In this document: positions 4,400 to 27,075 of the stretch, in pieces
Position numbering within the stretch: position 1 is the stretch's first letter
Layout: each line of letters begins with the position of its first letter
Sequence record: PQ657772.1
Length of the DNA stretch: 64,000 nt
Direction: 5' to 3' (one strand)
The notes under the pieces: generated by a model
The model's input: the letters and a program-made list of their open reading frames with translations, nothing else
What the model was told of the DNA's origin: nothing
Databases searched by the model: none
Translations under genes and position numbers: made by a program

Positions 4400-4852
4400 T
4401 TAGTTATATGAAGTAAATAGATCAATACTTTCATCATCTACACTGATTAATTTACCAGTTGAACTAACAAACACAATATTACCACCAGGGGTGAGTTGAA
4501 CACGCTGGTTTACTGAATATTGATCACTAAGGTTATAATTAGCCCATTCAACTACATAACGCTGTTCAACACCATTAGTATCATAAAGATAAACGTGTGT
4601 AACATCACGCATTTTTAAACGGTCTAACAGTGTAGAGTTATCCATGAAATCCGATGGTGTATCACTACGCAATGCAATACCGAACTCACCAATACCAGTA
4701 CTAATAGTTAGACCGTTGGAAAAACGACTACAAAGAGTTTTCTCGTCAGCAATATGCATCCATAAAACATTCTTTACATCAATCTCAATGAACTCACAAT
4801 TTTCAAAAACTAAACCTACTTTAGAAACCTTACCATTAAATTGCATCATCAA
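4400..4852 (-). CDS. Hypothetical protein
   Basis: 150 aa ORF, GGAG RBS. Confidence 0.8.
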   Translation of the reverse strand: MMMQFNGKVSKVGLVFENCEFIEIDVKNVLWMHIADEKTLCSRFSNGLTISTGIGEFGIALRSDTPSDFMDNSTLLDRLKMRDVTHVYLYDTNGVEQRYVVEWANYNLSDQYSVNQRVQLTPGGNIVFVSSTGKLISVDDESIDLFTSYN

Positions 4853-5285
4853 CTCCTATTTTTTTGTATTTTAAAATAAAATCTCTTGCTGCTTTCATAA
4901 GTTTAAATGGAATAGCTAATTCTTTGACAGTACTATCCATGAAATGTTCTTCTTCTGTATCATAGAATGTTGACATGAAATGGTCACAATCATCAATTCT
5001 ATCCCAGAAATCAGAAGTACTTGGTTTGTTGGCAATAACAGTGATTGTTTTAGTATAGGAAGCATGTATCGTTAATCCAATATCACCCTTTTCAACACGA
5101 ATTATAAATGAACTATCAGATGTATAGTTCAGCCAACAATCTTTACCGAAGTATACAGTACTGTGTTTCTTCTCAAATGTATTACTGTTTTCAAGTACAT
5201 CAATGACAATATCAACTGCATTATCACTTAAAATTTTGACCATATCATCTTCCTCGTAGGGTTCTGGCAATTTCAAAGATACCAT
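4836..5285 (-). CDS. FQxST-box family paralog
   Basis: C-terminal DTEEEHFMDSTVKEL. Confidence 0.75.
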   Translation of the reverse strand: MVSLKLPEPYEEDDMVKILSDNAVDIVIDVLENSNTFEKKHSTVYFGKDCWLNYTSDSSFIIRVEKGDIGLTIHASYTKTITVIANKPSTSDFWDRIDDCDHFMSTFYDTEEEHFMDSTVKELAIPFKLMKAARDFILKYKKIGVDDAI

Positions 5286-5315
5286 TTATGTTGTCAATTG
5301 TCAACATTTAAATGT

Positions 5316-5792
5316 TTATCCTTTATTTTGTTGTACGTTTTTATGTAGTACACCACAAATATAAAATAATTTACTTAGATTAGAATAACTTATGTTAGTT
5401 AGATCGTATACGAAATTTAGTTGCATGTACATATCTTCAGTTAAATCATACAACGATTCATCCACATCAATTACGATTTTGTGCGTGGTATCAATCTCTA
5501 CTTTATTAGGCCACATATCAATAACATAATCATTACCATGTTTTTCAGATATGGAAATGAACACATTATCGCTTTGTTCTAAAAACTCCATGTATCCGTT
5601 AAGAAATGATCCAGTTATTATCTCATATTCACCAGAATAATACGTTGTTCTGGACTCAAATGCATTAAAAAATATAAAACGATATGTTTGGTTGATATAC
5701 TCATCCATTAAACTAATAACTTCTTTATTCATTACATTAATCCCCACAAGAAAAAAGGCCGATTCATAATGAATCAGCCTTAAGTATAACAC
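5316..5792 (-). CDS. FQxST-box family paralog, divergent (true start probably MNKEV)
   Basis: C-terminal LTEDMYMQLNFVYDLTNISYSNL. Confidence 0.65.
   Translation of the reverse strand: MLYLRLIHYESAFFLVGINVMNKEVISLMDEYINQTYRFIFFNAFESRTTYYSGEYEIITGSFLNGYMEFLEQSDNVFISISEKHGNDYVIDMWPNKVEIDTTHKIVIDVDESLYDLTEDMYMQLNFVYDLTNISYSNLSKLFYICGVLHKNVQQNKG
5751..5781 (-). terminator. Intrinsic terminator immediately downstream of a promoter
   Basis: AAGGCTGATTCAT-TATGAATCGGCC-TTTTTT on minus strand. Confidence 0.65.
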
Positions 5793-5812
5793 AGTAGAAG
5801 TAAAAATGTCAA
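5783..5812 (-). promoter_or_regulatory. Sigma70-type promoter
   Basis: TTGACA-N18-TATACT with TGTG extended -10. Confidence 0.65.
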
Positions 5813-5972
5813 CTTCTAAAATACAGTATCAAAGAGGAATAAAAAAGATACTGTTAGAGGGTAACGAATATAATGAACCATGAGGGTGATATCATTATAC
5901 TTTAAAAGAGTGATAGCTTCTAGACAAAAGGAGGAATTCAGTACCGACTAGAAGCTATCCGGTTAAACGATT

Positions 5973-6257
5973 TCAGTACTGAATGTTTAGTTTAGGATGA
6001 GTATGTCCATCTTCGATTTGCTTTAGAATCGAGTCGCGGATCTCCACTGCACCCTGATAACTGTATTTATCGTTCGGAACTACCCATGTATATTCACCAT
6101 CAGTGGTTTTAAAATCAATACATGGATTGTCTCTGTATTCAGATGCAATGATTGAAATAACATGCAATGAATTCAATGAATGATTTATATAAGGATAATT
6201 GTTATTGTCTCGGAACGTGAATGTTTTTAGTTCATCAGGTGCAACAATAAATTCCAT
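5973..6257 (-). CDS. Hypothetical protein
   Basis: 94 aa ORF, 1-nt stop/start overlap. Confidence 0.75.
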   Translation of the reverse strand: MEFIVAPDELKTFTFRDNNNYPYINHSLNSLHVISIIASEYRDNPCIDFKTTDGEYTWVVPNDKYSYQGAVEIRDSILKQIEDGHTHPKLNIQY

Positions 6258-6448
6258 TATTCATCCTCGTACTTCTTGAATGGTTGAACATCTCCATTGA
6301 AGTCTTTGCACATCTTAGTTGCACGAACTTCAGTGTTGTTGTGGTAATTTTTCTTAAATTCATAAGAAACATAATTACGAATACCAGGTGTATGAATAAT
6401 AGCAAGAACCAATGTACGACCAAATAAGCATAACAAATTCAAAAACAT
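6257..6448 (-). CDS. Hypothetical protein
   Basis: 63 aa ORF, GGAG RBS. Confidence 0.55.
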   Translation of the reverse strand: MFLNLLCLFGRTLVLAIIHTPGIRNYVSYEFKKNYHNNTEVRATKMCKDFNGDVQPFKKYEDE

Positions 6449-6461
6449 ATTAAGCTCCGAG

Positions 6462-6821
6462 TTATGGATTAATCAAACGACACATACCAACTATAACATT
6501 TATCTCTTCTAATGTCAAGTCACCAATGTCATTTATCATTGAGTACTGGAATAATGACTCTTCTGTGTACTCAAAATCATGTACTGCTATAAAAAATGGC
6601 TCCTTAGAAACATCTAATGTTATCTTAGCCATTGTACTATATAAATCAAATTGATACAAAATATTAGGAGAAGTATATGCTATGTATATATTATTAGATT
6701 CAGATGGGTGTACCAGTGTGAATACATCATAACATAATATTTTTATGTTAGGATCATCAAAATTACCAGTATAAAGATTCTTACGAACATCTTGCATTAT
6801 ACGAGTTATTAAACTAGTCAT
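6462..6821 (-). CDS. FQxST-box family paralog
   Basis: YTEESLFQYSMINDIGDLTLEEI. Confidence 0.8.
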   Translation of the reverse strand: MTSLITRIMQDVRKNLYTGNFDDPNIKILCYDVFTLVHPSESNNIYIAYTSPNILYQFDLYSTMAKITLDVSKEPFFIAVHDFEYTEESLFQYSMINDIGDLTLEEINVIVGMCRLINP

Positions 6822-7230
6822 TAAACGGATTTGGAACCTCTTCTGGAATCAATCTTTTAACTTTAAGGATAGCACTAATGTCCTCAAATGTCAATCCATT
6901 TAGATCGTTTACGAGACAGTACTGAAAGAATTTTTCTTCAGTATCAATATCGTCAAAATTCAATTCAATTCTAGTGTCATAATAATCACTATTTACATTA
7001 GCAATTCTGATTTTAACTCGTTCAAAATACACATCAAATGAATAAAAATGATTATTGATTTCATAACCAAGAAAAATATTAAAACATTTACTCAAATCAG
7101 TGGTTTCGTTCAAATCGTCATCATAGCAAAAAACTCTAACTTCACCAATATCTTCTAATTGTACATCATGCAGTGACCATGCGTTGTTTTTTAATACGTA
7201 GTTCACCATTTTAACAATGTTGTATGTCAT
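6814..7230 (-). CDS. FQxST-box family paralog
   Basis: DTEEKFFQYCLVNDLNGLTFEDI. Confidence 0.8.
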   Translation of the reverse strand: MTYNIVKMVNYVLKNNAWSLHDVQLEDIGEVRVFCYDDDLNETTDLSKCFNIFLGYEINNHFYSFDVYFERVKIRIANVNSDYYDTRIELNFDDIDTEEKFFQYCLVNDLNGLTFEDISAILKVKRLIPEEVPNPFND

Positions 7231-7246
7231 AGTGTACCTTATAAAA

Positions 7247-7642
7247 TTATTTACGATTCCTTGCGGAGTTCTTGTTCCTTGCTCTGAATGTTGGTGTCAT
7301 TGAATGACAATTAGGGCAAAGGATTTTTAAATTTGGTAGGTCATTATTTGTAGCATCACCATCAATGTGCTCAACTTCTGTCAGTACTGCACCATCAGTT
7401 GGATGACGTTTATCCCATCCACACTCTTCACATGCAGTTCCGCGTGTTTCATGTAGGTATCTTCTCACAAATGGACATAACTGTATAGTAATACCTTTAT
7501 ATCCTGGATGTTCACCGTTAAGCCATTTATCAACTTTCTGTTGATATTGTAGCTCTTGTTGACATGCAACACTACAATATTTTGTTTGACCCTTTCGAAC
7601 CAATTCAATTTTACAACATGCACAATAACGTTTTTCTTTCAT
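7247..7642 (-). CDS. HNH endonuclease (Zn-binding), directly downstream of tRNA-Thr
   Basis: CEECGW...EVEHIDGDATNNDLPNLKILCPNCHS; start MKEKR at 7642 with GGAG RBS (the track's 7714 start lies in the tRNA). Confidence 0.85.
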   Translation of the reverse strand: MKEKRYCACCKIELVRKGQTKYCSVACQQELQYQQKVDKWLNGEHPGYKGITIQLCPFVRRYLHETRGTACEECGWDKRHPTDGAVLTEVEHIDGDATNNDLPNLKILCPNCHSMTPTFRARNKNSARNRK

Positions 7643-7707
7643 ATAGTTCTCCATATAGTATGGAGTATTTATTTTCAAGAAAAATGTTATTTCTAAGAAT
7701 ATATTTG

Positions 7708-7778
7708 TGGTCAATATTAGAATCGAACTAATGACTCAGACTTACAAGATCCGTGTTATACCATTTAACTAATCAACC
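7708..7778 (-). tRNA. tRNA-Thr(TGT), no encoded CCA (followed by CAA)
   Basis: Acceptor GGTTGAT/ATTGACC, D arm GTTA/TAAC, anticodon arm CGGAT-CTTGTAA-GTCTG, T arm ATTAG-TTCGATT-CTAAT. Confidence 0.8.
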
Positions 7779-7782
7779 AGAT

Positions 7783-8034
<252 letters not shown>

Positions 8035-8036
8035 TA

Positions 8037-8852
<816 letters not shown>

Positions 8853-8869
8853 TCCCTATATCATGTGAA

Positions 8870-9814
<945 letters not shown>

Positions 9815-9845
9815 CCCTTTCGTTTACATTGCACAGTACTTAATC

Positions 9846-10223
<378 letters not shown>

Positions 10224-10239
10224 ATCACCAACTTTAATT

Positions 10240-10578
10240 AAAAAAATGGATGGTGACGCTTTTAAACGCCGCTGTTAATTCAGCTTTATAACCACCCGTT
10301 TTAACTTGCCTTTCGGCTACCTTGACGTGGGGCGTACAGGCTACTAAAAGCAACTACTGTAAACATATTTCCACGCCTTACCCTTTTAAATAAAAGTCCA
10401 TCCGGTTTTCCAGTTTGGTGAAGGATAGTCACCTCTAGTTTAAACCTGCTAGTCAAGTAATAATTGCCTATCGTCCAATTATCAAACCCGTCTAGGTTAA
10501 CATTCACCACTTCCTAGAGTACCAGAGATCTTGTTCTGGATTGCATCGACGTAACTTACACCATATACGTCTGATTGT
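10240..10578 (-). ncRNA. Large structured ncRNA (~340 nt), unknown family
   Basis: Own consensus promoter (10586-10614), about 14 hand-predicted helices, GAAA tetraloop and G-U pairs favour minus strand, ends in T7 run. Confidence 0.75.
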
Positions 10579-10585
10579 GGAATTC

Positions 10586-10610
10586 ATTATATCAGTACTG
10601 AACTATTTAG

Positions 10611-10614
<4 letters not shown>
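10586..10614 (-). promoter_or_regulatory. Repeated sigma70 promoter, copy 2 (drives ncRNA)
   Basis: TTGACT-AAATAGTTCAGTACTGA-TATAAT, identical to copy 1. Confidence 0.85.
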
Positions 10615-11206
<592 letters not shown>

Positions 11207-11210
<4 letters not shown>

Positions 11211-11367
11211 ATTCGTACCAGTAGTTCAATTAAGTACATTTCATATGCTGGATCGTTGATAAGTTTATCATACAGATGTGGCTCTGAAATGAATTCCCAA
11301 TGATACTTTAGCCATTTACCGATACCCGAATATCTAAAATTAATGTCATTCATCCATTCTTCATGTG

Positions 11368-11371
<4 letters not shown>
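11207..11371 (-). CDS. THEEW-family small protein (54 aa)
   Basis: MTHEEWMNDINFRYSGIGKWLKYHWEFISEPHLYDKLINDPAYEMYLIELLVRI; ATGA-coupled. Confidence 0.8.
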
Positions 11372-11532
<161 letters not shown>

Positions 11533-11549
11533 GGTTTAACCTTTAATTG

Positions 11550-11635
<86 letters not shown>

Positions 11636-11639
11636 ATTT

Positions 11640-11755
<116 letters not shown>

Positions 11756-11772
11756 ATAGTCTGTTCCAATAT

Positions 11773-12045
11773 TTATGATTCGGTTTCGGGATTAAATTTT
11801 ATAAATTCATCTTTATGTTCATCTTCAATCGCAATATCTTCTACGTGTTCAGGCCAGATTGTGGTGTCCCCTTGGTAGAAGCGATAGTTATCGAATTCTG
11901 CACTACGTGTTCTTCCCTGTTCCCAACCAATAGTACAGTCATGATATACATCACCACTACGTGTGCGAATGCTTATTGAGTCTTGTGTTTCATAAAGAAC
12001 GTCAATGCGTGTGTTGCGATTTGTATTGAATTTTTCAAAATGCAT
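11773..12045 (-). CDS. Hypothetical protein
   Basis: 90 aa ORF. Confidence 0.7.
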   Translation of the reverse strand: MHFEKFNTNRNTRIDVLYETQDSISIRTRSGDVYHDCTIGWEQGRTRSAEFDNYRFYQGDTTIWPEHVEDIAIEDEHKDEFIKFNPETES

Positions 12046-12065
12046 AGTAATCCCAATAACAATTG

Positions 12066-12284
12066 TTATTCTTGTGGTTTAGTTACACCAACACCAATAA
12101 TACTTTTAATATCAATATGGATATTAGCAAGTTCATTACTGTCAAACGGGTTAGTTTCAGTTACAACAACAGTGGTGTCATTAACTAAAACTACTGAACC
12201 TTTTACACGGTATCCCTGAAGGAGTACTTGTACATTGTCACCAGCGTTTAATGAGTTAATAACTTCTAATAGAGTAGATTCCAT
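12066..12284 (-). CDS. Hypothetical protein (Sm/SH3-like beta pattern)
   Basis: 72 aa, AAGGA RBS. Confidence 0.7.
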   Translation of the reverse strand: MESTLLEVINSLNAGDNVQVLLQGYRVKGSVVLVNDTTVVVTETNPFDSNELANIHIDIKSIIGVGVTKPQE

Positions 12285-12294
12285 TTTATTTTCC

Positions 12295-12492
12295 TTACGG
12301 TTTACTATTTTTACGTTTTTCTGATTCGGGTATAGTTTTCATTTCACCAATACATAGTTCCATGATGAGCACACCTTTGTCATTATAACGTACTACATCT
12401 TCAATGTCAAAATGTCTCGCACTATGAACAACTTCAATACATGCATCATCGGGATATGATTCCAATAATGCTACAAGTTCTGCTTTAGTCAC
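12295..12492 (-). CDS. Hypothetical protein
   Basis: MTKAELVALLESYPDDACIEV, common phage small-protein pattern; GTG start with AGGA. Confidence 0.75.
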   Translation of the reverse strand: MTKAELVALLESYPDDACIEVVHSARHFDIEDVVRYNDKGVLIMELCIGEMKTIPESEKRKNSKP

Positions 12493-12505
12493 TTTGGATT
12501 CCTCG

Positions 12506-12854
<349 letters not shown>

Positions 12855-12864
12855 ACTATATCTT

Positions 12865-13035
12865 CTATTTCCTAATTGCAAGCTCATAGATGTACCAGTG
12901 ATTACTATCCTCATCAAGTACAAATGATTTGAAAAGTTGTTTATCTTTTAACACATCATAATGACCTTGGCGTATACCAAAACCAAAAGGATTATGTTTA
13001 AATTTTAGTTCATCTAACCATTCTTTGTGTGTCAT
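12865..13035 (-). CDS. THEEW-family small protein (56 aa)
   Basis: MTHKEWLDELKFKHNPFGFGIRQGHYDVLKDKQLFKSFVLDEDSNHWYIYELAIRK; ATGA-coupled; not in ORF track. Confidence 0.75.
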   Translation of the reverse strand: MTHKEWLDELKFKHNPFGFGIRQGHYDVLKDKQLFKSFVLDEDSNHWYIYELAIRK

Positions 13036-13217
13036 CTTATTTTGTCCATGACTGCTATACTAAAATATGTACCAAAATCATCACAATTGATGATGTTGTT
13101 ATAGTACTCGATTGGATTACGCAATGATATATACAATTCAAGCTTAAAATAGTATATATCTGCTGCATTTATATTATAGTGTAGATTAAACCACTCATCA
13201 AATGTCTTAGGCTGCAT
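13032..13217 (-). CDS. THEEW-family-like small protein (61 aa)
   Basis: MQPKTFDEWFNLHY... N-terminus matches T(H/F)xEW. Confidence 0.65.
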   Translation of the reverse strand: MQPKTFDEWFNLHYNINAADIYYFKLELYISLRNPIEYYNNIINCDDFGTYFSIAVMDKIR

Positions 13218-13611
13218 TATATTTATCTTTATAAAAATCCATGATTTTAGTCAACAGTACTGCAATCGTATAATCTAAATCAGGATAAAGTAAATTGTAC
13301 TGAAATTCTTCCTCTACACTATAGTTTGTGGTGCAGTACTGATAGTCTTTATAACCAATGGAAAAATGGTTAGGATACAATGTACAACGAAAACGATATG
13401 CTTCATCTGTCATATAATCATTGTATTCAACACAGAAGTATAGTGATTTTGCATTTAATTCAATAAGCTCGACGAAACCATCAGGTAATGAATGGTTATA
13501 AATTACTGAATCTTCATTAAACCATTCATAGTATTTTTCCAAAAAATCACTAATGGATACATCCAGACTTTGTATAGGTGGAGTTATGATAATTTGAACT
13601 TCTTTATTCAT
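13207..13611 (-). CDS. FQxST-box family paralog
   Basis: SVEEEFQYNLLYPDL. Confidence 0.75.
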   Translation of the reverse strand: MNKEVQIIITPPIQSLDVSISDFLEKYYEWFNEDSVIYNHSLPDGFVELIELNAKSLYFCVEYNDYMTDEAYRFRCTLYPNHFSIGYKDYQYCTTNYSVEEEFQYNLLYPDLDYTIAVLLTKIMDFYKDKYNAA

Positions 13612-14114
13612 TTCGACCCCTTACTATATTTCACGTATGGGCTATCATACAGATCATAACTTTTTTGTGCACGTTCTTTTCGGCGTTCATACATGATTCT
13701 ATCATAATCTTTGGCTTTCTGATTTGCTTCATTATACAATTTTAAAATTAGCAAAAATGCATCAAGGTCAGGATAGTTTGCTGGATTGATAGTACTCAGC
13801 ATAAATCGTTCTTCTTCAGTTCTAGCTAAGTCAAATTCATACTTAATAGTTTTATATCCACTCCATTTATATGTATGTGTTACTTTATTAGTAAGTACAT
13901 TGTACCCAACGAAGTCAGTACTACCATCAAGTACGCGAGTAATCATAATAGATGTACCAATGACAATCTGCACAGAACTCATATCTGAAGTTTTAAAGTA
14001 ATATATATTACCACGTCGCAGATTAACTTCTCGATCTCCAATGCGAACATGCTTAATAACTTCAGTTAATGGTTCTGGGACACCACGAATCGGCATGTTA
14101 GTATTCCTCAACAA
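13608..14114 (-). CDS. FQxST-box family paralog
   Basis: RTEEERFMLSTINP. Confidence 0.75.
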   Translation of the reverse strand: MLRNTNMPIRGVPEPLTEVIKHVRIGDREVNLRRGNIYYFKTSDMSSVQIVIGTSIMITRVLDGSTDFVGYNVLTNKVTHTYKWSGYKTIKYEFDLARTEEERFMLSTINPANYPDLDAFLLILKLYNEANQKAKDYDRIMYERRKERAQKSYDLYDSPYVKYSKGSK

Positions 14115-14667: not shown

Positions 14668-14714
14668 ATGTTCTCCTTAGTAAGTCATAGTATTATATCA
14701 GAGTTTCATTGCAC

Positions 14715-15107
14715 TTACCAGCATGTTTTCATAACTTCTGTGATGTAAATCATTTTATCTTTTAGTTCATAAGGGATGCAAATTTCACCTGGGCTTAACG
14801 TTGTGTTCTTTTGAAACTCATCTTCTTCGGAATCAGCCAGATAAAATGGGTGCGTCACAAAGGCATCATCAACTGGACGCTTATTTGGTTTCATTAATGC
14901 ATCATGATTTACAAAATAATAAGCATCAATATCAGGACGAAAATACAAACAATCAACTTTGTAGTTCTGGTTTATCCACAAAGATAAAGAATATGTCATT
15001 TGGTTACCAATTTGTCTTGGACCAGAAATAATTGTATTGATGTTATTTTTATCTTGTATCATTTCATAAATGAAATCTATCATTTCATGTAGTTCTGATT
15101 CAGTCAT
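14715..15107 (-). CDS. FQxST-box family paralog
   Basis: DSEEDEFQKNTTL. Confidence 0.75.
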   Translation of the reverse strand: MTESELHEMIDFIYEMIQDKNNINTIISGPRQIGNQMTYSLSLWINQNYKVDCLYFRPDIDAYYFVNHDALMKPNKRPVDDAFVTHPFYLADSEEDEFQKNTTLSPGEICIPYELKDKMIYITEVMKTCW

Positions 15108-15158
15108 TTTATTTCCTTAAAAAAAATACCCAGTACTAGACTGGGCATAAAGTAATGT

Positions 15159-18218: not shown

Positions 18219-18412
18219 TCCTCACGATGCATATAGTACATAAACATCGCCAACCATATGCAGAATCCAACACAACGAAGAAACATATCAACGGTTGGAT
18301 CTGTGCCACCATTAACTTGGTAAACGATTACTGGGATTAAAGCAATAGCAATAGACACTGTACATAAGATGAATGCAACAAACACCTCAAACATAAACTT
18401 AATCGTTTCCAT
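18215..18412 (-). CDS. Small two-TM membrane protein
   Basis: Two hydrophobic segments in 65 aa. Confidence 0.7.
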   Translation of the reverse strand: METIKFMFEVFVAFILCTVSIAIALIPVIVYQVNGGTDPTVDMFLRCVGFCIWLAMFMYYMHRED

Positions 18413-18986
18413 TATTATCCTTCAATGTGTAGTGTAGTACATCTAAAAAGTTATACATTGATTCATTACGCATAACCTTGATTGTTAAATTACCACAACC
18501 CAACATACGTTTGAGGCGACGCTTCACCGCAGTTAAATCATGTGTACTGTTCGTATACAGACCATTAACCTGACCTGGAACAGTAGGAACATGAAGAATG
18601 TAATCATAATTCATTAGTAAGCGTTGATTATATTTCTTTAATGCTTGCTTGTATTCTGAAATATTTTCAAAGAATGTACAATAACGGTCGTAACGATTCA
18701 TTTTATTCAAAATTGAAATACGAAAAGCGTTACCACTATTCCAATCATCTTCAGTTGGGTTTGGGTTGATATGTGCCATGTTAGCTGTACTATACCCACC
18801 ACTTGTGAAAACTTCAGAATATCCATTCTCAAAAACATACAATGTTGCTTTGTGTCCTCGGAATTCTTTACGGTACTTTGACAGAACTTGAATGTGATTA
18901 CGCTTGGACTTGTACATTTCGTAACCTTCATAATCGCCACTGAATTCACAAATTTTATCAACACCAGCCATTTCGTATATCCTCAT
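18399..18986 (-). CDS. Hypothetical protein
   Basis: 195 aa downstream of promoter 19004-19032. Confidence 0.8.
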   Translation of the reverse strand: MRIYEMAGVDKICEFSGDYEGYEMYKSKRNHIQVLSKYRKEFRGHKATLYVFENGYSEVFTSGGYSTANMAHINPNPTEDDWNSGNAFRISILNKMNRYDRYCTFFENISEYKQALKKYNQRLLMNYDYILHVPTVPGQVNGLYTNSTHDLTAVKRRLKRMLGCGNLTIKVMRNESMYNFLDVLHYTLKDNNGND

Positions 18987-19003
18987 TTGATTAATATAGG
19001 AGT

Positions 19004-19032
19004 ATTATACATACTCCATTTTCATGTGTCAA
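19004..19032 (-). promoter_or_regulatory. Consensus sigma70 promoter, -10 inside a hairpin
   Basis: TTGACA-N17-TATAAT; GGAGTAT-GTATA-ATACTCC. Confidence 0.8.
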
Positions 19033-19172
19033 GCTTTATAATACGGAAGACTTTTCACTAAAGATTCGGACGTATTATTTTTTACCCATGTACTACCGTT
19101 GTCATTGGATACATATCCAGTACCATTAACAAACTTACGCATAATACCAGTAAAAATATTAGTATACACCAT
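19029..19172 (-). CDS. Small hypothetical protein (47 aa)
   Basis: MVYTNIFTGIMRKFVNGTGYVSND...; coupled to upstream stop. Confidence 0.55.
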   Translation of the reverse strand: MVYTNIFTGIMRKFVNGTGYVSNDNGSTWVKNNTSESLVKSLPYYKA

Positions 19173-19342
19173 TACTCAGTATCCTTTGGTTTAGAATGTA
19201 AACCATACTTTTCATCATAACGATCATAGGTAGTGCCATTAGTACTAGCTTTGATGCTTTCGGTGCGATTGATTGGTTCGATTTTGACACCACGATAACC
19301 AATCTCTTCTTTAAATTGTTCCCATGATTCACGTAGACTCAT
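19172..19342 (-). CDS. Small hypothetical protein (56 aa)
   Basis: MSLRESWEQFKEEIGYRGVK...; AGGGG RBS. Confidence 0.65.
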   Translation of the reverse strand: MSLRESWEQFKEEIGYRGVKIEPINRTESIKASTNGTTYDRYDEKYGLHSKPKDTE

Positions 19343-19358
19343 TTTAGTCCCCTTTTTG

Positions 19359-19502
19359 TTATTTCATACACTCACGTAGGTCAATCTTTTCAACTGAACC
19401 ACCGAGTACTAGATAGTGAAAATTAGAATCTTTGTTTGCCATATTCAAAAGATCTGCTTTCTGTTGAAGCGTAAAGCGTGAAGTACTGTTACGTACTGGC
19501 AT
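19359..19502 (-). CDS. Small hypothetical protein (47 aa)
   Basis: MPVRNSTSRFTLQQKADLLNM...; AAGGAG RBS. Confidence 0.65.
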   Translation of the reverse strand: MPVRNSTSRFTLQQKADLLNMANKDSNFHYLVLGGSVEKIDLRECMK

Positions 19503-19504
19503 AG

Positions 19505-19948
19505 TTACTCCTTAAAGTAGATATCACGAATTTGCTTAATCATCTCTAACTCTTGAAGTCCTATCATACCAAAGTTTTCTTGTACTGTCAACTGTTGGAA
19601 GTACATTTCCTCTAAATTATTATAAGGAATATCCACTAATGATAAAGGTACTCGTTCTTCACTGAATGCCAGATCTTCAACTAAATGTTTTATAATCATA
19701 ACAGTAAATGAATCTTTTTGTATATGAAATTTGTAAAACGTTTGGTTAGTAGTGAACATTGTGTTTGATGGATGGAAACCCATTTCAACAAATACTGTAT
19801 CTTTATCATTATGTGTGCAATATGTACATCTTGAATTCGCAAGAACTTTAGATTTTGGGTAATAAAAATCACCCAGCAACTTCTGTCGTTTCCAGTCCTC
19901 ATATACAACTGGATGCTTAACCTTCTTCAATCGGTGCAGTACTGTCAT
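19505..19948 (-). CDS. FQxST-box family paralog
   Basis: NLEEMYFQQLTVQENFG. Confidence 0.8.
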   Translation of the reverse strand: MTVLHRLKKVKHPVVYEDWKRQKLLGDFYYPKSKVLANSRCTYCTHNDKDTVFVEMGFHPSNTMFTTNQTFYKFHIQKDSFTVMIIKHLVEDLAFSEERVPLSLVDIPYNNLEEMYFQQLTVQENFGMIGLQELEMIKQIRDIYFKE

Positions 19949-20328
19949 AGTTTTTTCCAGTCCAATGAATCGAAATCGATTTGTTCAGGGTTATCAACAG
20001 CGACAACTCGTGCATTATGAAGAGTTTCAAAGTAGCCGTTCCACGGTGTTCGTAATGGAACTGTCACATCACCAACTTTAACCAAGAATGAATATGCTGG
20101 TGATATTGGGTCAAACCACTCTTTTTGTTTAGCATTTTCGACGATGGTTTCGTGTTCTTTTGTATAGCAATTATCTTGCTTCATATAAAACACCCAATGC
20201 TCTTTTAGGCACTGTAAAGCAGCAACTGCTTCCTCTTTAGAAGACCATTGAATATCAATTGTATTAAGAACGTCATAACAATTTTCAGTATCACCTGTAG
20301 TGTAATGTACTTCAATGCAGTATTTCAT
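19945..20328 (-). CDS. Hypothetical phage protein
   Basis: IEVHYTTGD...PWNGYFETL, a recurrent phage hypothetical pattern as recalled. Confidence 0.8.
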   Translation of the reverse strand: MKYCIEVHYTTGDTENCYDVLNTIDIQWSSKEEAVAALQCLKEHWVFYMKQDNCYTKEHETIVENAKQKEWFDPISPAYSFLVKVGDVTVPLRTPWNGYFETLHNARVVAVDNPEQIDFDSLDWKKL

Positions 20329-20783
20329 TATTCAACACCTTTTAGTAATTTACAAATTTCAATCATATGATAATAACATGTATTCCAAAATTGCCCATTA
20401 GTACTACCAACATCATGCACAGTACTTTGTTGGAAAACATATTCATCATTGAACAACTTTTTAATATCATCAATGTAAAATTCTGGTTTTGAATCATTAT
20501 TGTATTCAATACTCGTTTCACCATCTGGATCAAGTGAAATTGATGATATATCGTGAATGCCTATCGGACTTGTTGGATAAATTCGCAACGTAAGAGGATA
20601 GAAGTCTGGATCGGTTTCATATGTATATTCGATTATGTAATTACCATCTCCAGTGATTGAGTTATATTTAAATGTAGGTTCAAATACATTATGGACATTA
20701 TAACCTAGTTTATTCATCTCGTTAAGATGTAATAATATTTTATGTAAAGTCCCTAAGACATGAATCAAATTATCAATTTTCAT
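20328..20783 (-). CDS. FQxST-box family paralog
   Basis: FNDEYVFQQSTVHDVG. Confidence 0.8.
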   Translation of the reverse strand: MKIDNLIHVLGTLHKILLHLNEMNKLGYNVHNVFEPTFKYNSITGDGNYIIEYTYETDPDFYPLTLRIYPTSPIGIHDISSISLDPDGETSIEYNNDSKPEFYIDDIKKLFNDEYVFQQSTVHDVGSTNGQFWNTCYYHMIEICKLLKGVE

Positions 20784-21292
20784 TTACGATCCTTTGAAAA
20801 GTTCAGTTTAAAAGATTTACCAAATTCCATTGTAGCTTTACCCAGATTGTTAATATTTTCTTTCAACATTTCTTGCATTTTTCTCACACTTTCATTCCAG
20901 GCTTCCTCTTCTTTACGGAGGATTGGTCGCAATCGTTCCTGAATATCGTTGAAACGTGTATTGAGTTCAACCAATGATTCATATGTGAAATCTTTCATGT
21001 CGATGATAGTACTTCGTTGAAAGAATTCTTCTTCGGATAAATTACTTAAAATGATTTTATCACTACCAATAGATAATGTCAATTCATCATCTTGATTTTT
21101 TTTAATTACAATACGTACAGGTGTTATAGTAATGTGAACATCATGATTATTAAAAGTTTCAGTTTGGTTTGACATTCTGAATTGTAGTCTTCCGGTTAGT
21201 GCGTGTACTGGCATTGGGTTCTTTTTACCAGTAATAACATCTTCCCACGAATCAAGGATATTATTAATAATTTTAACATAAGGAACTGTCAT
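20780..21292 (-). CDS. FQxST-box family paralog with C-terminal coiled coil
   Basis: LSEEEFFQRSTIIDM. Confidence 0.8.
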   Translation of the reverse strand: MTVPYVKIINNILDSWEDVITGKKNPMPVHALTGRLQFRMSNQTETFNNHDVHITITPVRIVIKKNQDDELTLSIGSDKIILSNLSEEEFFQRSTIIDMKDFTYESLVELNTRFNDIQERLRPILRKEEEAWNESVRKMQEMLKENINNLGKATMEFGKSFKLNFSKDRK

Positions 21293-21336
21293 ATATATGC
21301 ACCTATGAAAAATCCACGCATAGCGTGGATCTGTAA

Positions 21337-21867
21337 TTAATCGAGTATAGTAACTTCAATCAAACGAATTTCGATGAATTCGTTTTCAGTTTCCCATGAT
21401 GAACCTAATTTCTTATTAAGTTCAGTTTTAACATCACTTTTAAATTTTCCCATAGTATTAGGAATAATTTGTTTGGTTAGTTTGTCATAACCACAATAAA
21501 ACATAGGTTTCTCCCTTCGAGATATTAGCTCAACAAAATCCTTTGGATATGCAGGTATATTATGCATCACTTCATGAATGCACTCAGTACTTGAATCTTG
21601 TACTTTGTACATTACATTAAGTTTACCTTTGAAAGTTCTAATCATATCAACAATAATACCTTTACCAGATTTAAGTAAAGTTCCATTCTTTGTATGAGAA
21701 CAATAGAATACCTCATCACCAATATTAGGATAGTACAAATTAAATTCTAATTCTTCCTTTGATGACTGACGTTGAAATTTCATTACACGATCAGTATAGG
21801 TGGGGTAGTTCTTCATGTTCAAAAGAATATCTCTCTTAGTAAGTGTGATATAACTGGCATAGTCCAT
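21337..21867 (-). CDS. Hypothetical protein
   Basis: 176 aa ORF; true start may be MKNYP. Confidence 0.7.
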   Translation of the reverse strand: MDYASYITLTKRDILLNMKNYPTYTDRVMKFQRQSSKEELEFNLYYPNIGDEVFYCSHTKNGTLLKSGKGIIVDMIRTFKGKLNVMYKVQDSSTECIHEVMHNIPAYPKDFVELISRREKPMFYCGYDKLTKQIIPNTMGKFKSDVKTELNKKLGSSWETENEFIEIRLIEVTILD

Positions 21868-22679
21868 CCATTCCCAAGCATTTTGTATGCTTGTGTCTTA
21901 CTAGACACTTTAAAGAAATCTACAGGAATACCCTGTAATTTACAACATTCTACTACACTTAAGTGTCTATAGTCAATATTTCTTTTACCATTCTCCAATA
22001 GATATTGACGATTAATCGTTGGGTCACGAAACACCAACTGTCGTCTTGATTTATTAAAGTACTGGTTACAATCACCACCCTTAAAATAGTTAGCATCTAT
22101 ACAGTACGAAGCGGTTCTGTCAGTGTACCAACCATCTTCAATGATATCTTGAAGTTTAGGGGCATTTGATAATGCAGGTGGTATAAAAAGCTTATCAGTA
22201 CTGCACCAGTAGTATCTCTGCCTGAAGTGAGGCGTATAATGCTGGGAATTTATCAGTACTGGTGTGATTCCTAAAATACTATTAATGTATTCTTTGAAAT
22301 CTTCCTTCATTTTAACATTCTCGAACAGAAATTGCAAGTTTGGATTTACACTTTTGATGTGCTCAAAAATATCAACCATAACCAAAAATAACTGTCCACG
22401 TATATCATTCAAGCCACCTTGCTTACCAGCAACAGACCAGGCTTGACATGGGAATCCTCCCATGAGTAAATCTATCTTATCCCACTCAATATCCCATTCT
22501 TTCCACTTAGTCACATCACCTAACTGGATAATATCAGGAAAATTCTCGGAAGATTCAGCAATTGCGTACTTGTCAATTTCAGATGAGTAATATTTTTCAA
22601 CTGGAATACCTGCATCTGCCAATGCCATATATCCAACGCTCATTCCATTAAAAAGTGACAGTACTCTGATAGGTTTCAT
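21819..22679 (-). CDS. Orphan C5-cytosine DNA methyltransferase
   Basis: Motif I SLFNGMS, motif IV GGFPCQAWS, motif VI ENV, motif X LGNGW. Confidence 0.9.
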   Translation of the reverse strand: MKPIRVLSLFNGMSVGYMALADAGIPVEKYYSSEIDKYAIAESSENFPDIIQLGDVTKWKEWDIEWDKIDLLMGGFPCQAWSVAGKQGGLNDIRGQLFLVMVDIFEHIKSVNPNLQFLFENVKMKEDFKEYINSILGITPVLINSQHYTPHFRQRYYWCSTDKLFIPPALSNAPKLQDIIEDGWYTDRTASYCIDANYFKGGDCNQYFNKSRRQLVFRDPTINRQYLLENGKRNIDYRHLSVVECCKLQGIPVDFFKVSSKTQAYKMLGNGWTMPVISHLLREIFF

Positions 22680-22731
22680 ATAAAATCCTTTTTATATTGT
22701 TAAGGTACTATAATACATTATAGCATCTTAT

Positions 22732-23022
22732 TTAGAAATCTTCCAGACTTTTTTCATCGCACCATCGAGAAGTACAGATGATCGCAGATGCAAGAATTGA
22801 AGCACTGGCTCGACCACCACCAAGTAAGTACTGGCTAATGACACCAATCATATTGAAGACTTTATCATACTCAGCAAGGAGTTCAAAATCCTTCTTCCAA
22901 CATTGATATTCTTCTTCAGTAACATTAAACTCATCACCAAGTTCATTTAAAATCTTTTTAAGTACTGCACGATGTTCACTCATCTGATTCCCCATATCGT
23001 TCGTCGTAAAAATCATCATCAC
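22732..23022 (-). CDS. Hypothetical protein
   Basis: 96 aa. Confidence 0.65.
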   Translation of the reverse strand: MMMIFTTNDMGNQMSEHRAVLKKILNELGDEFNVTEEEYQCWKKDFELLAEYDKVFNMIGVISQYLLGGGRASASILASAIICTSRWCDEKSLEDF

Positions 23023-23061
23023 GGTTCAATGGTTCTTTTGGTTTTTCTGCCATATATTTCC

Positions 23062-23322
23062 TCACATGGTAAATGTATTATCACCATCCATATCTTCATC
23101 TGTAGCTTCAGCTAAGGTCTTAATCGTTAGCAATTCACGCTTCACGTACAACATGAAGACCTTTTCATAATTACCGAACATCATCTCAGGTGACATGTAA
23201 TTCTCCGTTACAATGACGATTGGACGGCCCTGTGACAGCATACGAAACATAGTACGGTATTTGTCAAAGGTGCGAAATTCATCCATGTTCATCATGTGGC
23301 GTTTACGAACTACTTTAGTCAT
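23062..23322 (-). CDS. Hypothetical protein
   Basis: 86 aa, AAGG RBS. Confidence 0.75.
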   Translation of the reverse strand: MTKVVRKRHMMNMDEFRTFDKYRTMFRMLSQGRPIVIVTENYMSPEMMFGNYEKVFMLYVKRELLTIKTLAEATDEDMDGDNTFTM

Positions 23323-23336
23323 TTTGATACCTTTAG

Positions 23337-23792
23337 TTAATTGAACTCGATTTCTGGATAATGATTATAGAACATCTCACGTACTGCGTCAAGCTGTTCT
23401 TTAAATTTCTCAATGTCATCAAGAGTTAGTACAGTGTTACTAACTGTACTCAACTGAAAAAGTGCCTCTTCAGTACTGTTTTCTGATAAATCAAATGTAC
23501 ATGATGAATCATCTGTTATAATATTATCACATATTTCAAATGTGTCAATATGAACATCATTGAGTAGATCACCACTATAATCATTATATATGAACACAAA
23601 AATGTATGATGGTTTTTTTATCTCAGTTTCTGACTCATAGGCTACCAAATCATATGTTACGTAACATTTAAAGTCAGGTGAATCGTATTCCATAGATACA
23701 ATTCCTATATCACGATATTGATTCGCTTCACTGATTAAATCCGGTATAGGTGTAATACTAAGTAAATGGAAAAACTGTCCTGGATTTAGCAT
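23337..23792 (-). CDS. FQxST-box family paralog
   Basis: STEEALFQLSTVSNTVLTLDDI. Confidence 0.8.
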   Translation of the reverse strand: MLNPGQFFHLLSITPIPDLISEANQYRDIGIVSMEYDSPDFKCYVTYDLVAYESETEIKKPSYIFVFIYNDYSGDLLNDVHIDTFEICDNIITDDSSCTFDLSENSTEEALFQLSTVSNTVLTLDDIEKFKEQLDAVREMFYNHYPEIEFN

Positions 23793-24241
23793 TTGATTAC
23801 CTTCGGGTTTTGCTCTGTGATATCAAACATAGATAGAACGAAATCATTTAGATTTTCAACACAATTGATTATAGTGCTTAAATCAGAATAACTAACTGTT
23901 AAATTTTTAACAAGAGATTCCTGAAAGTATCCTTCTTCAGTTGAGCAATAACTCACATTTGAGATAGTCTCATAATGTATATCTTTGCTTGTTTTACATG
24001 TTATAATTTCTATTATATCCGATGTTGTGTTATATAATAATATAAATGTTGTTGTTCGTGAATTCTTATTGTAAAATGCGAGTTCAGTGCTGTCATATGT
24101 TTTCTCAATAAGAACATTGTACTCTTCCGAAAACGATGTGGAAATTCTAATTATCTCTTCTGGTTCAGGAACATAAGATCCATCAAATTTACAAGACAAT
24201 GCAATTTCAAAATGATTTTTTATTTCATCAATTTTCATCAT
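23786..24241 (-). CDS. FQxST-box family paralog
   Basis: STEEGYFQESLVKNLTVSYSDL. Confidence 0.8.
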   Translation of the reverse strand: MMKIDEIKNHFEIALSCKFDGSYVPEPEEIIRISTSFSEEYNVLIEKTYDSTELAFYNKNSRTTTFILLYNTTSDIIEIITCKTSKDIHYETISNVSYCSTEEGYFQESLVKNLTVSYSDLSTIINCVENLNDFVLSMFDITEQNPKVIKC

Positions 24242-24633
24242 AGCTCACCATTTAATTTGCTATTTACATATTCTAATGCTTTTTTAACAATGCCAATTTC
24301 TGTAACTCCTATTACATTTTTCTCGATTAACGACAATTGAAATAGTTCATCTTCCTCAATATCAATACTATGGGTTCTTGACCAATAAACGTTGAAGTCA
24401 TATGCATATCGTATTGTATTTTCTTTAATATCAAGTACCAATATAACCATACCATTGTGTAGGTATGTCAGTGTTTTTCCGTATATATTAAAAATTAACC
24501 TATCTGGTGTACCCAATGGAAGATGAATTATATTTTGTGTAGTTCCAACAATAACAAAATCATTATCTATATTTTTATTCAAGTCACCTAGAATGTCATA
24601 TATAGTAGTCATGTTAATCTTGACCCTCAGCAT
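24238..24633 (-). CDS. FQxST-box family paralog
   Basis: IEEDELFQLSLIEKN. Confidence 0.8.
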   Translation of the reverse strand: MLRVKINMTTIYDILGDLNKNIDNDFVIVGTTQNIIHLPLGTPDRLIFNIYGKTLTYLHNGMVILVLDIKENTIRYAYDFNVYWSRTHSIDIEEDELFQLSLIEKNVIGVTEIGIVKKALEYVNSKLNGEL

Positions 24634-25033
24634 TTCTGATGATTCGCATTACTTCTCTGGATACGTTGTATACTTTTTTATAGTACTCAAATGTAACTGA
24701 ACCAAAATCATTAACCGTACTATCCATGAAGAACGATTCTTCGGTGCAATACACACCTGTAATTGAAACATGCTCATGATGGAATTTAGCATCTTTCCAG
24801 TAACGGAATTCGAAAATAAATTGCCCGTCATGACCAACCCTACAACACTCAGCACGGTCACTGTCTACGCAGCTAATCACAATATCCCTTTCGGAGTCAT
24901 ACCAGATATTTCCAATATTTGTTTCAATAACTGCATAATCAATTTTTGTAGAATTGGGAATTACACCTTTTTTTACCAGTACTAGACTGGTATTATCAAT
25001 ATCAAGTAAACTTACCATATCAACTCCCCACAA
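24614..25033 (-). CDS. FQxST-box family paralog
   Basis: CTEESFFMDSTVNDFGSVTFEY. Confidence 0.8.
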   Translation of the reverse strand: MWGVDMVSLLDIDNTSLVLVKKGVIPNSTKIDYAVIETNIGNIWYDSERDIVISCVDSDRAECCRVGHDGQFIFEFRYWKDAKFHHEHVSITGVYCTEESFFMDSTVNDFGSVTFEYYKKVYNVSREVMRIIRNAEGQD

Positions 25034-25430
25034 TTACTGTGTTTTTAATTTCTAACAATTCACTATACATCTTCTTCAATTGTACAATATCTTCATATAA
25101 AATACCACCCATATCATCAATCAAAGAACGTTGGAATAGTGATTCATCTGACTGTATCGTGTCCAAATCAGAAATTTTCAATACTGTAACTGGGTTTAGG
25201 GTGTTTACAATAAGTTTGTTTGTGTATGGTATGTATGTGATCTTGATATTCATTTCCGAATCAAGGGCATACAACCTCAAAACAGACAAATCACCACAAA
25301 GTTGGATTTTTGGTTCATCAAACTCATCAGACCACCACATAGTACTAGTCATATAATTGACGTGTTGGTTCAAATGTGATATATCCAAATCGAAATAATA
25401 TTTTAGTTCATTGTGTAAATCTAAACTCAT
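25020..25430 (-). CDS. FQxST-box family paralog
   Basis: QSDESLFQRSLIDDMGGILYEDI. Confidence 0.8.
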   Translation of the reverse strand: MSLDLHNELKYYFDLDISHLNQHVNYMTSTMWWSDEFDEPKIQLCGDLSVLRLYALDSEMNIKITYIPYTNKLIVNTLNPVTVLKISDLDTIQSDESLFQRSLIDDMGGILYEDIVQLKKMYSELLEIKNTVIVGS

Positions 25431-25485
25431 AAATTTATCCTCTATGCATCATTATCTTACAGTGTAGGATAAACCCACGATAATG

Positions 25486-25881
25486 TCAAGATGTGAATTG
25501 CTTATACCAGTGATACAGTTCTTTCAATTCTTCAGTACTGAATAGAACATCTTCAATCGTTGTTTGTTGGAAGTGGTAATCTTCATTTAAGTACATTGAA
25601 ATATTTTTATATACTTTTCGATTACATTTCCCAAGAAATGATGTTCTTTTGGATGTATATTCAATAAATGTTAACTTATCTAATTCTACATCCAATGACA
25701 ATTTCATACAGTATTCAGTATCATCTACGTACATAAGTTTATTTGAATAACAATCAACTGTGATATATTCTTTATGTGAGAATTGGTATATACCATTAAA
25801 TTTTTTACCATTTGTACTTCTGAATTTTTCAAGGTAATAAGAGAGTGGTTTAGATATTGTACTACCAATAGTATTATTCAT
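25486..25881 (-). CDS. FQxST-box family paralog
   Basis: LNEDYHFQQTTIEDVL. Confidence 0.8.
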   Translation of the reverse strand: MNNTIGSTISKPLSYYLEKFRSTNGKKFNGIYQFSHKEYITVDCYSNKLMYVDDTEYCMKLSLDVELDKLTFIEYTSKRTSFLGKCNRKVYKNISMYLNEDYHFQQTTIEDVLFSTEELKELYHWYKQFTS

Positions 25882-25902
25882 AGAACCTCAAAATTTAGAC
25901 AA

Positions 25903-25927
25903 GAAAAATGCCCCGAAGGTCGGGGCA
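25903..25927 (-). terminator. Intrinsic terminator
   Basis: TGCCCCGA-CCT-TCGGGGCA-TTTTT on minus strand. Confidence 0.75.
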
Positions 25928-26038
25928 GTACGAAAAAGATTTTGTACAAAAAAGGGGAATAATACAATAAAATAATAACGCATCATTATTATGTAAGGGA
26001 GGAAAGTAACATGATAATGTTAACCATTACTGGTATAA

Positions 26039-26590
26039 TTATTTATCATTTAATTCTTTTAATTGAGCTTGTATATCACCAGAAAGTTTACGGATTTTCT
26101 TGAAACAGTAAACACTATCATCAAGTTCAAGTTCTAGGCCGTGAGTGATTGCATAAAGCATTTCTGCAAGTACTAGATCCTGACGCATCCAGTTACCATT
26201 TTTATAGGTTGTCATTACACAATAAGGACAGTGGCTGTTTCCGGTTTGTTTACCCAGGAACACAGATTGGATTGTATCATGCTTGAAACCCACAAAAGAT
26301 TGGTTGATCTTGTTGATTTCAGCTACTACGTCCATTTGTGCACCAGTGTTGATTGCAAACACTTGGTCACCGTTCTCGGTTTTGTTAATGTTTAGTTCAA
26401 TATCACTACCAAGTTTACGAACAGCCAATGTATAAAGTAGGATTTCATACATATCATAATTGGTTGTTTCACCATTTGGTGCAGTTACATCGAGACTAAC
26501 ACCATGCATTTTAACTTCAGTACTGAATCCATCTTTATCTGCTAGAAAATCAGTGATTTGTTCAGTTAGGATTTTAATTTGTTCAATCAT
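26039..26590 (-). CDS. Hypothetical protein
   Basis: 183 aa, AAGGA RBS. Confidence 0.8.
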   Translation of the reverse strand: MIEQIKILTEQITDFLADKDGFSTEVKMHGVSLDVTAPNGETTNYDMYEILLYTLAVRKLGSDIELNINKTENGDQVFAINTGAQMDVVAEINKINQSFVGFKHDTIQSVFLGKQTGNSHCPYCVMTTYKNGNWMRQDLVLAEMLYAITHGLELELDDSVYCFKKIRKLSGDIQAQLKELNDK

Positions 26591-26646
26591 TATTCATATC
26601 CTTATGTTGGAAAAAGCCCCCATTACGGAGGCTTTTGTTAATCTAA

Positions 26647-27075
26647 TTATAGGGAAGCTTCGTATTCAGCTACAATGTCAACCATCTCATTGACAAAGTT
26701 GATATGGTCATGAGTTACGGTACGGAAATCATAAACCAGTGATTGTTGGAAGAATACGTCTTCAGCCAGATTACCTTCAAAGTTCAGGTCGATGTTTTCT
26801 TCATCGTTGGTTGGAGCAACTTTGATATTTAGTTGATTTTCATCAACGACCAATTTCACTACACAACCCAATGCAATCGCCAGTACATAGGCAGGTTTCT
26901 TAGCTGCTTCAGAACGGAATGGAGCACGTAGTGCACAAATGGTGCTGCTAATCTCATCATTCAGTTCTTTATATTTAACGTTAATCATCAGTTCTTCAAT
27001 TTTGACGCTCTCGATTACACGACCAGTTTCAGCAGCGAAGAAAGAGTGGTTACGGATAGTTTGTTCGATATTCAT
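26647..27075 (-). CDS. FQxST-box family paralog
   Basis: LAEDVFFQQSLVYDFRTVTHDHI. Confidence 0.8.
   Translation of the reverse strand: MNIEQTIRNHSFFAAETGRVIESVKIEELMINVKYKELNDEISSTICALRAPFRSEAAKKPAYVLAIALGCVVKLVVDENQLNIKVAPTNDEENIDLNFEGNLAEDVFFQQSLVYDFRTVTHDHINFVNEMVDIVAEYEASL

Follow-up and report, generated by a model that had tools for sequence, protein, structure and literature searches.

What are the many small and barely alignable proteins encoded between positions 4836 and 27075 of the DNA stretch analysed here, a window of 64,000 nucleotides whose coordinates are those of record PQ657772.1 minus 62,000? An earlier note, made from the letters alone, had listed 19 open reading frames (ORFs) in this region whose products share a short C-terminal motif, hereafter the box. 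It had read them as modular adaptors. Over 19000-27500 the window shares 100% identity with Escherichia phage EC.P1 (PQ657772.1; 356,444 bp; 586 annotated features), which belongs to the genus Asteriusvirus (121Q/PBECO4 group), and is 82-99% identical to about 36 other 121Q/PBECO4/phAPEC6-like jumbo coliphages of this genus. Every gene of the family region is annotated in EC.P1 as ‘hypothetical protein’. The best explanation of the whole, which we hold with middling confidence, is that these proteins form a single family of about 60 paralogs, built around the box as a nearly invariant keystone helix of 14 residues and serving as an early, host-directed repertoire.

All 19 ORFs (119-170 aa) were found where they had been placed, and all are on the minus strand (Table 1); the annotated starts trim four of them slightly (5316, 13608, 24238 and 24614). 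In the window the box reads [ST]-E-E-x-[YFL]-F-[QM]-x-S-[TL]-[VIL]-x-D, and matches to this regular expression are confined to minus-strand ORFs within 4836-27075. A hidden Markov model (HMM) of the box gave 19 matches among the window ORFs, with E-values of 1e-15 to 1e-8, compared with 0.024 for the next real ORF and, in a control set of 5,660 sequences made by shuffling every window ORF ten times, 0.051 at best; neither the regular expression nor the HMM detected the box in any other window ORF. As the members train their own profile, this first test is circular, and it was therefore repeated by leaving out one member at a time. The omitted members scored 10.2-38.4 bits; when their own box regions were shuffled 200 times, the top shuffle reached 3.7-9.4 bits, and each of the 19 outscored its own shuffles, the lowest scores being those of 9846, 13207 and 14715. 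The suspicion that a box profile would match shuffled proteins equally well is thus dispelled. A leave-one-out HMM of the N-terminal two thirds failed to recognise most members, in line with the description of these parts as barely alignable, and the second motif and final helix reported behind the box were also recovered, the motif being [ILF]-T-[YLF]-E-D-[IL]. This supports the picture of a paralog family that has expanded while one element stayed sharply constant and the remainder diverged widely.

With about 19 members the earlier note had counted all those of the window; genome-wide, the family comprises about 60. A profile of the 19 window members already picked up more copies elsewhere in the record. 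When the search was iterated locally over the window and positions 300-350 kb of the record, the number rose to 56: the 19 of the window are joined by a second array of 37 (or more) at EC.P1 record positions 310,870-340,793, beyond the window. A profile of the window members and their database relatives gave 56 matches on EC.P1 at E <= 0.01, among which are six singletons outside both arrays (E <= 5e-4). About 60 of the 586 EC.P1 genes, roughly 10%, belong to the family. The box of the second array is cleaner than that of the window (for example S-E-E-E-Y-F-Q-E-S-L-V-W-D), and its members often carry a helical C-terminal extension of 50-60 residues. For 21 of the 56 members the closest paralog is no more than two family positions away, compared with four expected at random, and the second array holds recent duplicates, some pairs of which are 56-73% identical; from these two observations it follows that the arrays arose by tandem duplication, through which the family would have grown to its present size. 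The window members are old copies, most pairs of which share just the box region of about 34 residues.

Beyond EC.P1, an HMMER search of 1.84 billion representative proteins returned 90 clusters at E <= 0.001, all of 62-222 aa and nearly all showing T-E-E-x-[YFL]-F-Q-x-S-[TL]..D..T-x-E-D. The box carriers are small proteins with a beta-rich part ahead of the box, and none of the 90 clusters is a large multidomain protein. In a sample of ten clusters, most were metagenomic proteins without a name, and a 50-kb metagenomic contig from a different phage contains at least nine to ten members within 20 kb. At E <= 0.001 the family profile matched 44 proteins in PBECO4, 30 in Klebsiella phage RaK2, 14 in Cronobacter phage GAP32 and 11 in Pectobacterium phage CBB, and none in Pseudomonas phage PA5oct. 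The family spans three genera (Asteriusvirus, Alcyoneusvirus and Mimasvirus) and, judging from these profile matches, is specific to the enterobacterial RaK2-like giant phages, among which its copy number varies.

Which fold does such a family adopt, and where does the box lie in it? AlphaFold2 was run on member 6814-7230 with an alignment of 86 family sequences and gave a model with a predicted local distance difference test score (pLDDT) of 91.1 and a predicted template modelling score (pTM) of 0.84, composed of a helix (residues 4-15), six consecutive strands (20-91) and two further helices (98-107 and 115-125). The box forms helix 98-107, with pLDDT above 90, and the last helix begins at the second motif (T-F-E-D-I). 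The model of member 26647-27075 (pLDDT 78.8, pTM 0.67) contains N-terminal helices, seven strands, the box helix (105-114) and a last helix (122-141); the order of the elements is identical in both models, although the N-terminal part of 26647-27075 cannot be aligned. Each member is predicted with good confidence to be a single compact alpha+beta domain, with an N-terminal helix, an antiparallel sheet of six to seven strands and two C-terminal helices, the first of which would be the box. Because both models give a single domain, the ‘variable N-domain’ of the earlier note would be the sheet of one small domain and not a separate module.

The conservation of the box, measured over 144 family sequences, can be read against these models. 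Its positions are occupied by T/S (75%), E (89%), E (83%), F (98%), Q (88%), S (83%), T/L (94%), V/I/L (95%) and D (72%), the sole alternative to the near-invariant Q being M (11%), and only positions 3, 7 and 11 are variable, which together form one narrow stripe along the helix. The information content reaches 3-4 bits per position in the box, compared with under 1.5 bits elsewhere. We infer that both conserved motifs are helix N-caps (S/T followed by acidic residues) combined with core residues. The S/T of the box would cap its helix, with E-E in the first turn; F, Q/M, S, T/L and V/I would face the sheet and the other helices; and T-x-E-D after the box would cap the last helix. Since about three quarters of the circumference of the box helix is constrained and its Q is replaced only by M, this helix is probably largely buried, sandwiched between the sheet and the remaining helices. 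Models and conservation together suggest that the box may act as the keystone of the fold, which would let the sheet and the loops diverge past sequence recognition.

These results bear directly on the adaptor proposal, according to which the box is the docking site for one shared partner, of the phage or of the host, while the variable part picks the targets. The high information content of the box extends to its polar residues E, E, Q, S and D, whose invariance could reflect such a common partner, and the family is large, early and diversified; the region does look like an early, host-directed part of the genome, as the proposal supposed. However, in both models there is only one domain, inside which the box is a confidently placed helix, and the restriction of free positions to one stripe, together with the Q/M exchange, suggests a mostly buried core, which the note itself had named as speaking against a box exposed for docking. 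In addition, the 1.84-billion search never placed the box in a large multidomain protein, and no candidate partner is known. We therefore consider a docking role of the box unlikely. The same holds for the analogy with the poxvirus ankyrin-repeat/PRANC proteins, which likewise make up a large viral paralog family, constant in a C-terminal element and diversified elsewhere, and with which a range of varied host targets may be shared as a supposed role. The poxvirus proteins consist of two modules, a repeat domain and a separable Skp1-binding box, whereas the phage box would be one of the helices that make up a small single-domain protein.

Comparisons with known folds and families gave few leads. 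Foldseek searches against the PDB and the AlphaFold DB clusters found nothing significant, the ESM Atlas nothing usable whether searched by shape or by features, and a BFVD structure search led back to the same phage clade, all its matches being uncharacterised proteins of RaK2, CBB and Erwinia phage pEa_SNUABM_47. None of the 19 window members had a significant Pfam match, PHROGs assigned to each member its own family of unknown function plus weak cross-matches, the family being split over many PHROGs, and a word-indexed protein search returned only close orthologues. One of the 86 family sequences matches Pfam PF21220 (RecQ-1-like helix-turn-helix; E 3.7e-12); it is neither one of the 19 window members nor among 21 other rows checked, and could represent a fusion, or a sequence that strayed into the set.

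With VIA-align, an aligner independent of Foldseek, the p32/gC1qR/Mam33/p22 family came at or near the top of the list for both models. The full-length alignments with p32/Mam33/p22 chains gave Z-scores of 5.9, 5.0, 4.8, 4.5 and 4.1 for 6814-7230 and of 5.8, 5.6, 5.2, 5.2 and 4.8 for 26647-27075, all below the value of 8 under which a VIA-align Z-score may reflect only a common arrangement. The order of elements in both phage models, with an N-terminal helix, an antiparallel beta-sheet and two C-terminal helices, resembles that of p32/gC1qR/Mam33, whose sheet has seven strands, and the p32 proteins are strongly acidic, as the phage members mostly are. On the other hand, the phage proteins are 40-60 residues shorter, have no sequence match to p32 and reach Z-scores of only 4.1-5.9, and their EExFFQxS box has no known counterpart in the p32 family. 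The Pfam model MAM33 (PF02330) matched none of 10 window members at E <= 1, none of the other nine at E <= 0.01 and none of the 86 family sequences at E <= 0.01. The fold thus appears p32-like in topology only. The best partial match of the 26647-27075 model was to polo-box domains (Z 6.1, likewise below 8, over 83 residues), which also present a six-stranded antiparallel sheet backed by a helix; yet the coverage is partial, there is no sequence relation and the polo box is a eukaryotic phosphopeptide binder.

The likeness to p32 raises the question of whether the box and the terminal helices form an oligomer interface, the paralogs assembling into homo- or hetero-oligomers such as p32/Mam33-like acidic rings, in which case the supposed common partner would be the family itself. 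The p32 protein is a doughnut-shaped homotrimer whose terminal helices take part in the trimer contacts, and the shared order of elements, the full-length alignment of both models and the acidity of the members would all suit such an assembly. Given that every Z-score lies below the threshold, that Foldseek finds nothing significant and that MAM33 does not match, we regard it as very unlikely.

We then turn to the setting of the genes and to their expression. They are tightly packed on a single strand, often with overlaps of 4-8 bases and with tRNA genes between them. Within 20 kb there are five perfect (12/12) sigma-70 promoters (TTGACA-N16-18-TATAAT) and nine that match at 11 of 12 positions, all on the coding strand; on a rough estimate, base composition would predict fewer than 0.1 perfect sites. 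Family members directly follow several of these promoters; a near-consensus promoter at 11035-11008, for instance, directly precedes 10611-10976. As consensus matches, these perfect promoters fit a strongly expressed early region, and the genes would be transcribed early from host-type sigma-70 promoters. In CBB, short hypothetical ORFs and clustered RpoD-like promoters occur together in a region that has been predicted to be early (PMC5259590), and we take this region as the probable counterpart of the window array.

The window array is the counterpart of phAPEC6 gp082c-gp134c, none of which is among the 62 virion proteins detected by mass spectrometry (PMC7247149); the virion list has no entry between gp078c and gp149c or between gp347 and gp549. 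The proteomics of this relative suggests that the family proteins are not virion components and would act inside the infected cell. A label ‘virion structural protein’ found under the top BLAST match belongs to 27270-27605, a non-family gene, and was discarded. The isoelectric point (pI) lies between 4.05 and 4.91 in 15 of the 19 members, with a median for the 19 of 4.55 compared with 5.60 for 54 neighbouring genes (p = 0.002). The most acidic window member is 23337-23792 (net charge -23, pI 4.05), and 13608-14096 has a basic C-terminal tail (pI 9.2).

Are all these copies needed, or are they redundant or decaying products of a runaway tandem duplication, without individual functions? Some turnover is seen. 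PBECO4 and UE-S1 possess an extra member (2116-2544 and 1339-1767 of the compared regions, respectively), situated between the orthologues of 4836 and 5316, which EC.P1 does not have; UE-S1 has no orthologue of 9846-10223, and its orthologue of 14715-15107 is present as two short coding sequences (12853-13246 of the compared region) and looks frameshifted. The PBECO4 match of 5316 covers only part of the protein, at 68% identity, and UE-S1 lacks a match altogether. Nevertheless, the frames are intact, 18 of the 19 members have one-to-one orthologues in PBECO4 and 17 in UE-S1 at a DNA divergence of about 13-15%, and the family persists across three genera. Moreover, the ratio of nonsynonymous to synonymous substitution rates (dN/dS) against the PBECO4 and UE-S1 orthologues is 0.19-0.22 for the box and somewhat higher, 0.26-0.29, for the sheet part, compared with 0.16-0.17 for non-family neighbours: every copy is under purifying selection, somewhat relaxed. 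Mere redundancy is thus highly improbable.

A reading of the box as a short linear motif for a host machine, either clamp-binding-like (Q-x-S-L-[VI], cf. QL[SD]LF) or a protease site (E-E-x-Y-F-Q resembles the tobacco etch virus (TEV) and 3C sites), is barely tenable despite the resemblance in many members, since the box lies in a confident helix of a folded domain and not in an extended or disordered tail, T occupies position 4 of the clamp pattern in 52% of the sequences and V, I or L position 5, half of the family having S-T and not S-L, and neither PF00863 nor PF00548 has a match in the 356-kb phage record, the control for PF00548 being uninformative. The TEV/3C site was accordingly rejected, there being no match to an NIa-like or 3C-like protease (the PF00548 half of this result is weak) and the motif being helical.

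We return to the family of about 60 paralogs with a proposed keystone box. Its members would form a repertoire of mostly acidic binders or inhibitors, the variable face of each of which may hold a different host or defence target. Several points weigh against this explanation. No homology ties any member to a function or a partner. The models cover two of the 19 members, and both derive from one shared family alignment. The burial of the box would follow from helix periodicity and the Q/M alternation and not from coordinates, and its near-invariant polar residues E, E, Q, S and D exceed the usual need of a fold, so that a ligand or partner common to the family, or an oligomer interface, may also be involved. 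The promoters are known as consensus matches alone, and contigs from four metatranscriptome (RNA) libraries cover the region in part and at low depth, and are indistinguishable from phage DNA. Finally, dN/dS between orthologues shows no sign of positive selection on the variable part, where an arms-race binder might show some. A bolder version, in which about 60 binders on a private scaffold, each with a near-invariant keystone helix under a freely diversifying sheet surface, form a germline repertoire, expressed early against many host defence or housekeeping targets simultaneously and possibly assembled by way of the constant helix into mixed p32-like acidic rings, seems to us distinctly unlikely.

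Table 1. Coordinates of the family members, tRNA genes and perfect sigma-70 promoters in the window. Scores are leave-one-out box scores in bits, followed in parentheses by the best of the member's own shuffles.
Feature	Coordinates	Strand	Box	Score (shuffles)	Remarks
Family member, 149 aa	4836..5285	-	TEEEHFMDSTV	25.0 (8.3)	pI 4.7
Family member, 138 aa (annotated start)	5316..5732	-	TEDMYMQLNFV	19.1 (8.4)	degenerate box
Family member, 119 aa	6462..6821	-	TEESLFQYSMIND	38.4	
Family member, 138 aa	6814..7230	-	E-E-K-F-F-Q-Y-C-L-V after T97		AlphaFold2-modelled
Family member, 125 aa	9846..10223	-	DEADEFQKRTVYEN	10.2 (5.2)	weakest box
Family member, 121 aa	10611..10976	-	TEEEYFQTSTL	32.9	
Family member, 134 aa	13207..13611	-	SVEEEFQYNLLY	11.6 (8.8)	weak box
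Family member, 162 aa (annotated start)	13608..14096	-	TEEERFMLSTIN	17.4	
Family member, 130 aa	14715..15107	-	SEEDEFQKNTT	11.7 (6.3)	weak box
Family member, 147 aa	19505..19948	-	LEEMYFQQLTVQE	22.5	
Family member, 151 aa	20328..20783	-	NDEYVFQQSTVHD	15.8 (9.0)	
Family member, 170 aa	20780..21292	-	SEEEFFQRSTIID	31.6	long charged C-terminal helix added
Family member, 151 aa	23337..23792	-	TEEALFQLSTVS	22.5	
Family member, 151 aa	23786..24241	-	TEEGYFQESLVK	31.2	
Family member, 124 aa (annotated start)	24238..24612	-	EEDELFQLSLIE	15.5 (7.3)	
Family member, 134 aa (annotated start)	24614..25018	-	TEESFFMDSTVND	35.6	
Family member, 136 aa	25020..25430	-	SDESLFQRSLIDD	28.8	
Family member, 131 aa	25486..25881	-	NEDYHFQQTTIED	25.4	
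Family member, 142 aa	26647..27075	-			AlphaFold2-modelled; N-terminal part 0.9 bits leave-one-out
tRNA gene Thr-TGT	7707-7778	-			among family genes
tRNA gene Asn-GTT	8877-8951	-			among family genes
tRNA gene Met-CAT	9042-9116	-			among family genes
tRNA gene Ser-ACT	9124-9215	-			among family genes
tRNA gene Ser-TGA	11640-11729	-			among family genes
Sigma-70 promoter, 12/12	19032-19004	-			consensus match
Sigma-70 promoter, 12/12	17172-17143	-			consensus match
Sigma-70 promoter, 12/12	12554-12527	-			consensus match
Sigma-70 promoter, 12/12	12410-12382	-			consensus match
Sigma-70 promoter, 12/12	8093-8066	-			consensus match

Among the members listed in Table 1, 6462-6821 is a tandem duplicate of the adjoining 6814-7230 (30% identity over 128 aa). 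The array is also interspersed with other elements. Two putative HNH-type homing endonuclease genes lie on the minus strand, at 7247-7714 (with a Cys-rich H-N-H signature) and at 9277-9834 (with an HKDGNKLNN motif), and the annotation of UE-S1 has an HNH endonuclease at the corresponding place. An ORF-poor gap at 10240-10578 is located directly downstream of an 11/12 promoter (10614-10586).

The earlier note had also pointed out that the S-T of five boxes is encoded by AGTACT. This is correct at 4929, 10689, 13791, 20421 and 21008, but the hexamer occurs 146 times in the window, compared with 21.5 expected from base composition, and this roughly 7-fold enrichment throughout the window rules out a DNA signal specific to the box. 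AGTACT is by far the most over-represented palindromic hexamer of the window and is often extended to CAGTACTG (sites include 110 and 62973); CAGTAC and GTACTG are over-represented 8.5-fold and 6.8-fold, and the excess already appears at the pentamer level. Palindromes are usually avoided by phages, and the AGTACT excess may mark a modification, regulatory or nuclease site. The serine codon of the box is AGT in all seven S-T boxes of the window and TCN in the S-L boxes, a split that reads as a mark of descent within the family.

How does this expansion compare with those already described in giant phages? Nearly 10% of the RaK2 gene products are paralogous (PMC3622015), CBB has 22 paralogous ORFs (PMC5259590) and the phAPEC6 paper mentions arrays of related genes. 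In Bacillus phage G, a zinc ribbon present in roughly 35 copies has been called unprecedented (PMC7824862); it is likewise a tandem expansion of small proteins without an assigned role in a giant phage genome, although the fold is different and the copies number about 35, compared with about 60 here. We found no description of the family, its box, its fold or its spread over the clade in the literature searched, which included the RaK2, CBB and phAPEC6 papers, and no Pfam entry; nor did this literature contain anything relevant on p32-like phage proteins. Among the paralog expansions reported in phages, this one is probably the largest.

This one family accounts for about one in ten genes of a phage of 356 kb, and for dozens of further genes in RaK2, GAP32 and CBB. 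Many members contain E-x-x-Y-F-Q, and some copies of the second array E-E-x-Y-F-Q-G, resembling a TEV site, which matters where TEV-cleavable tags are used. Some 60 ‘hypothetical proteins’ per genome become a single question, with a confident predicted fold and, in the box, a mutational handle. If the members are target-specific inhibitors, the arrays would be rich in new anti-defence and host-takeover proteins, and would also offer a natural binder scaffold.

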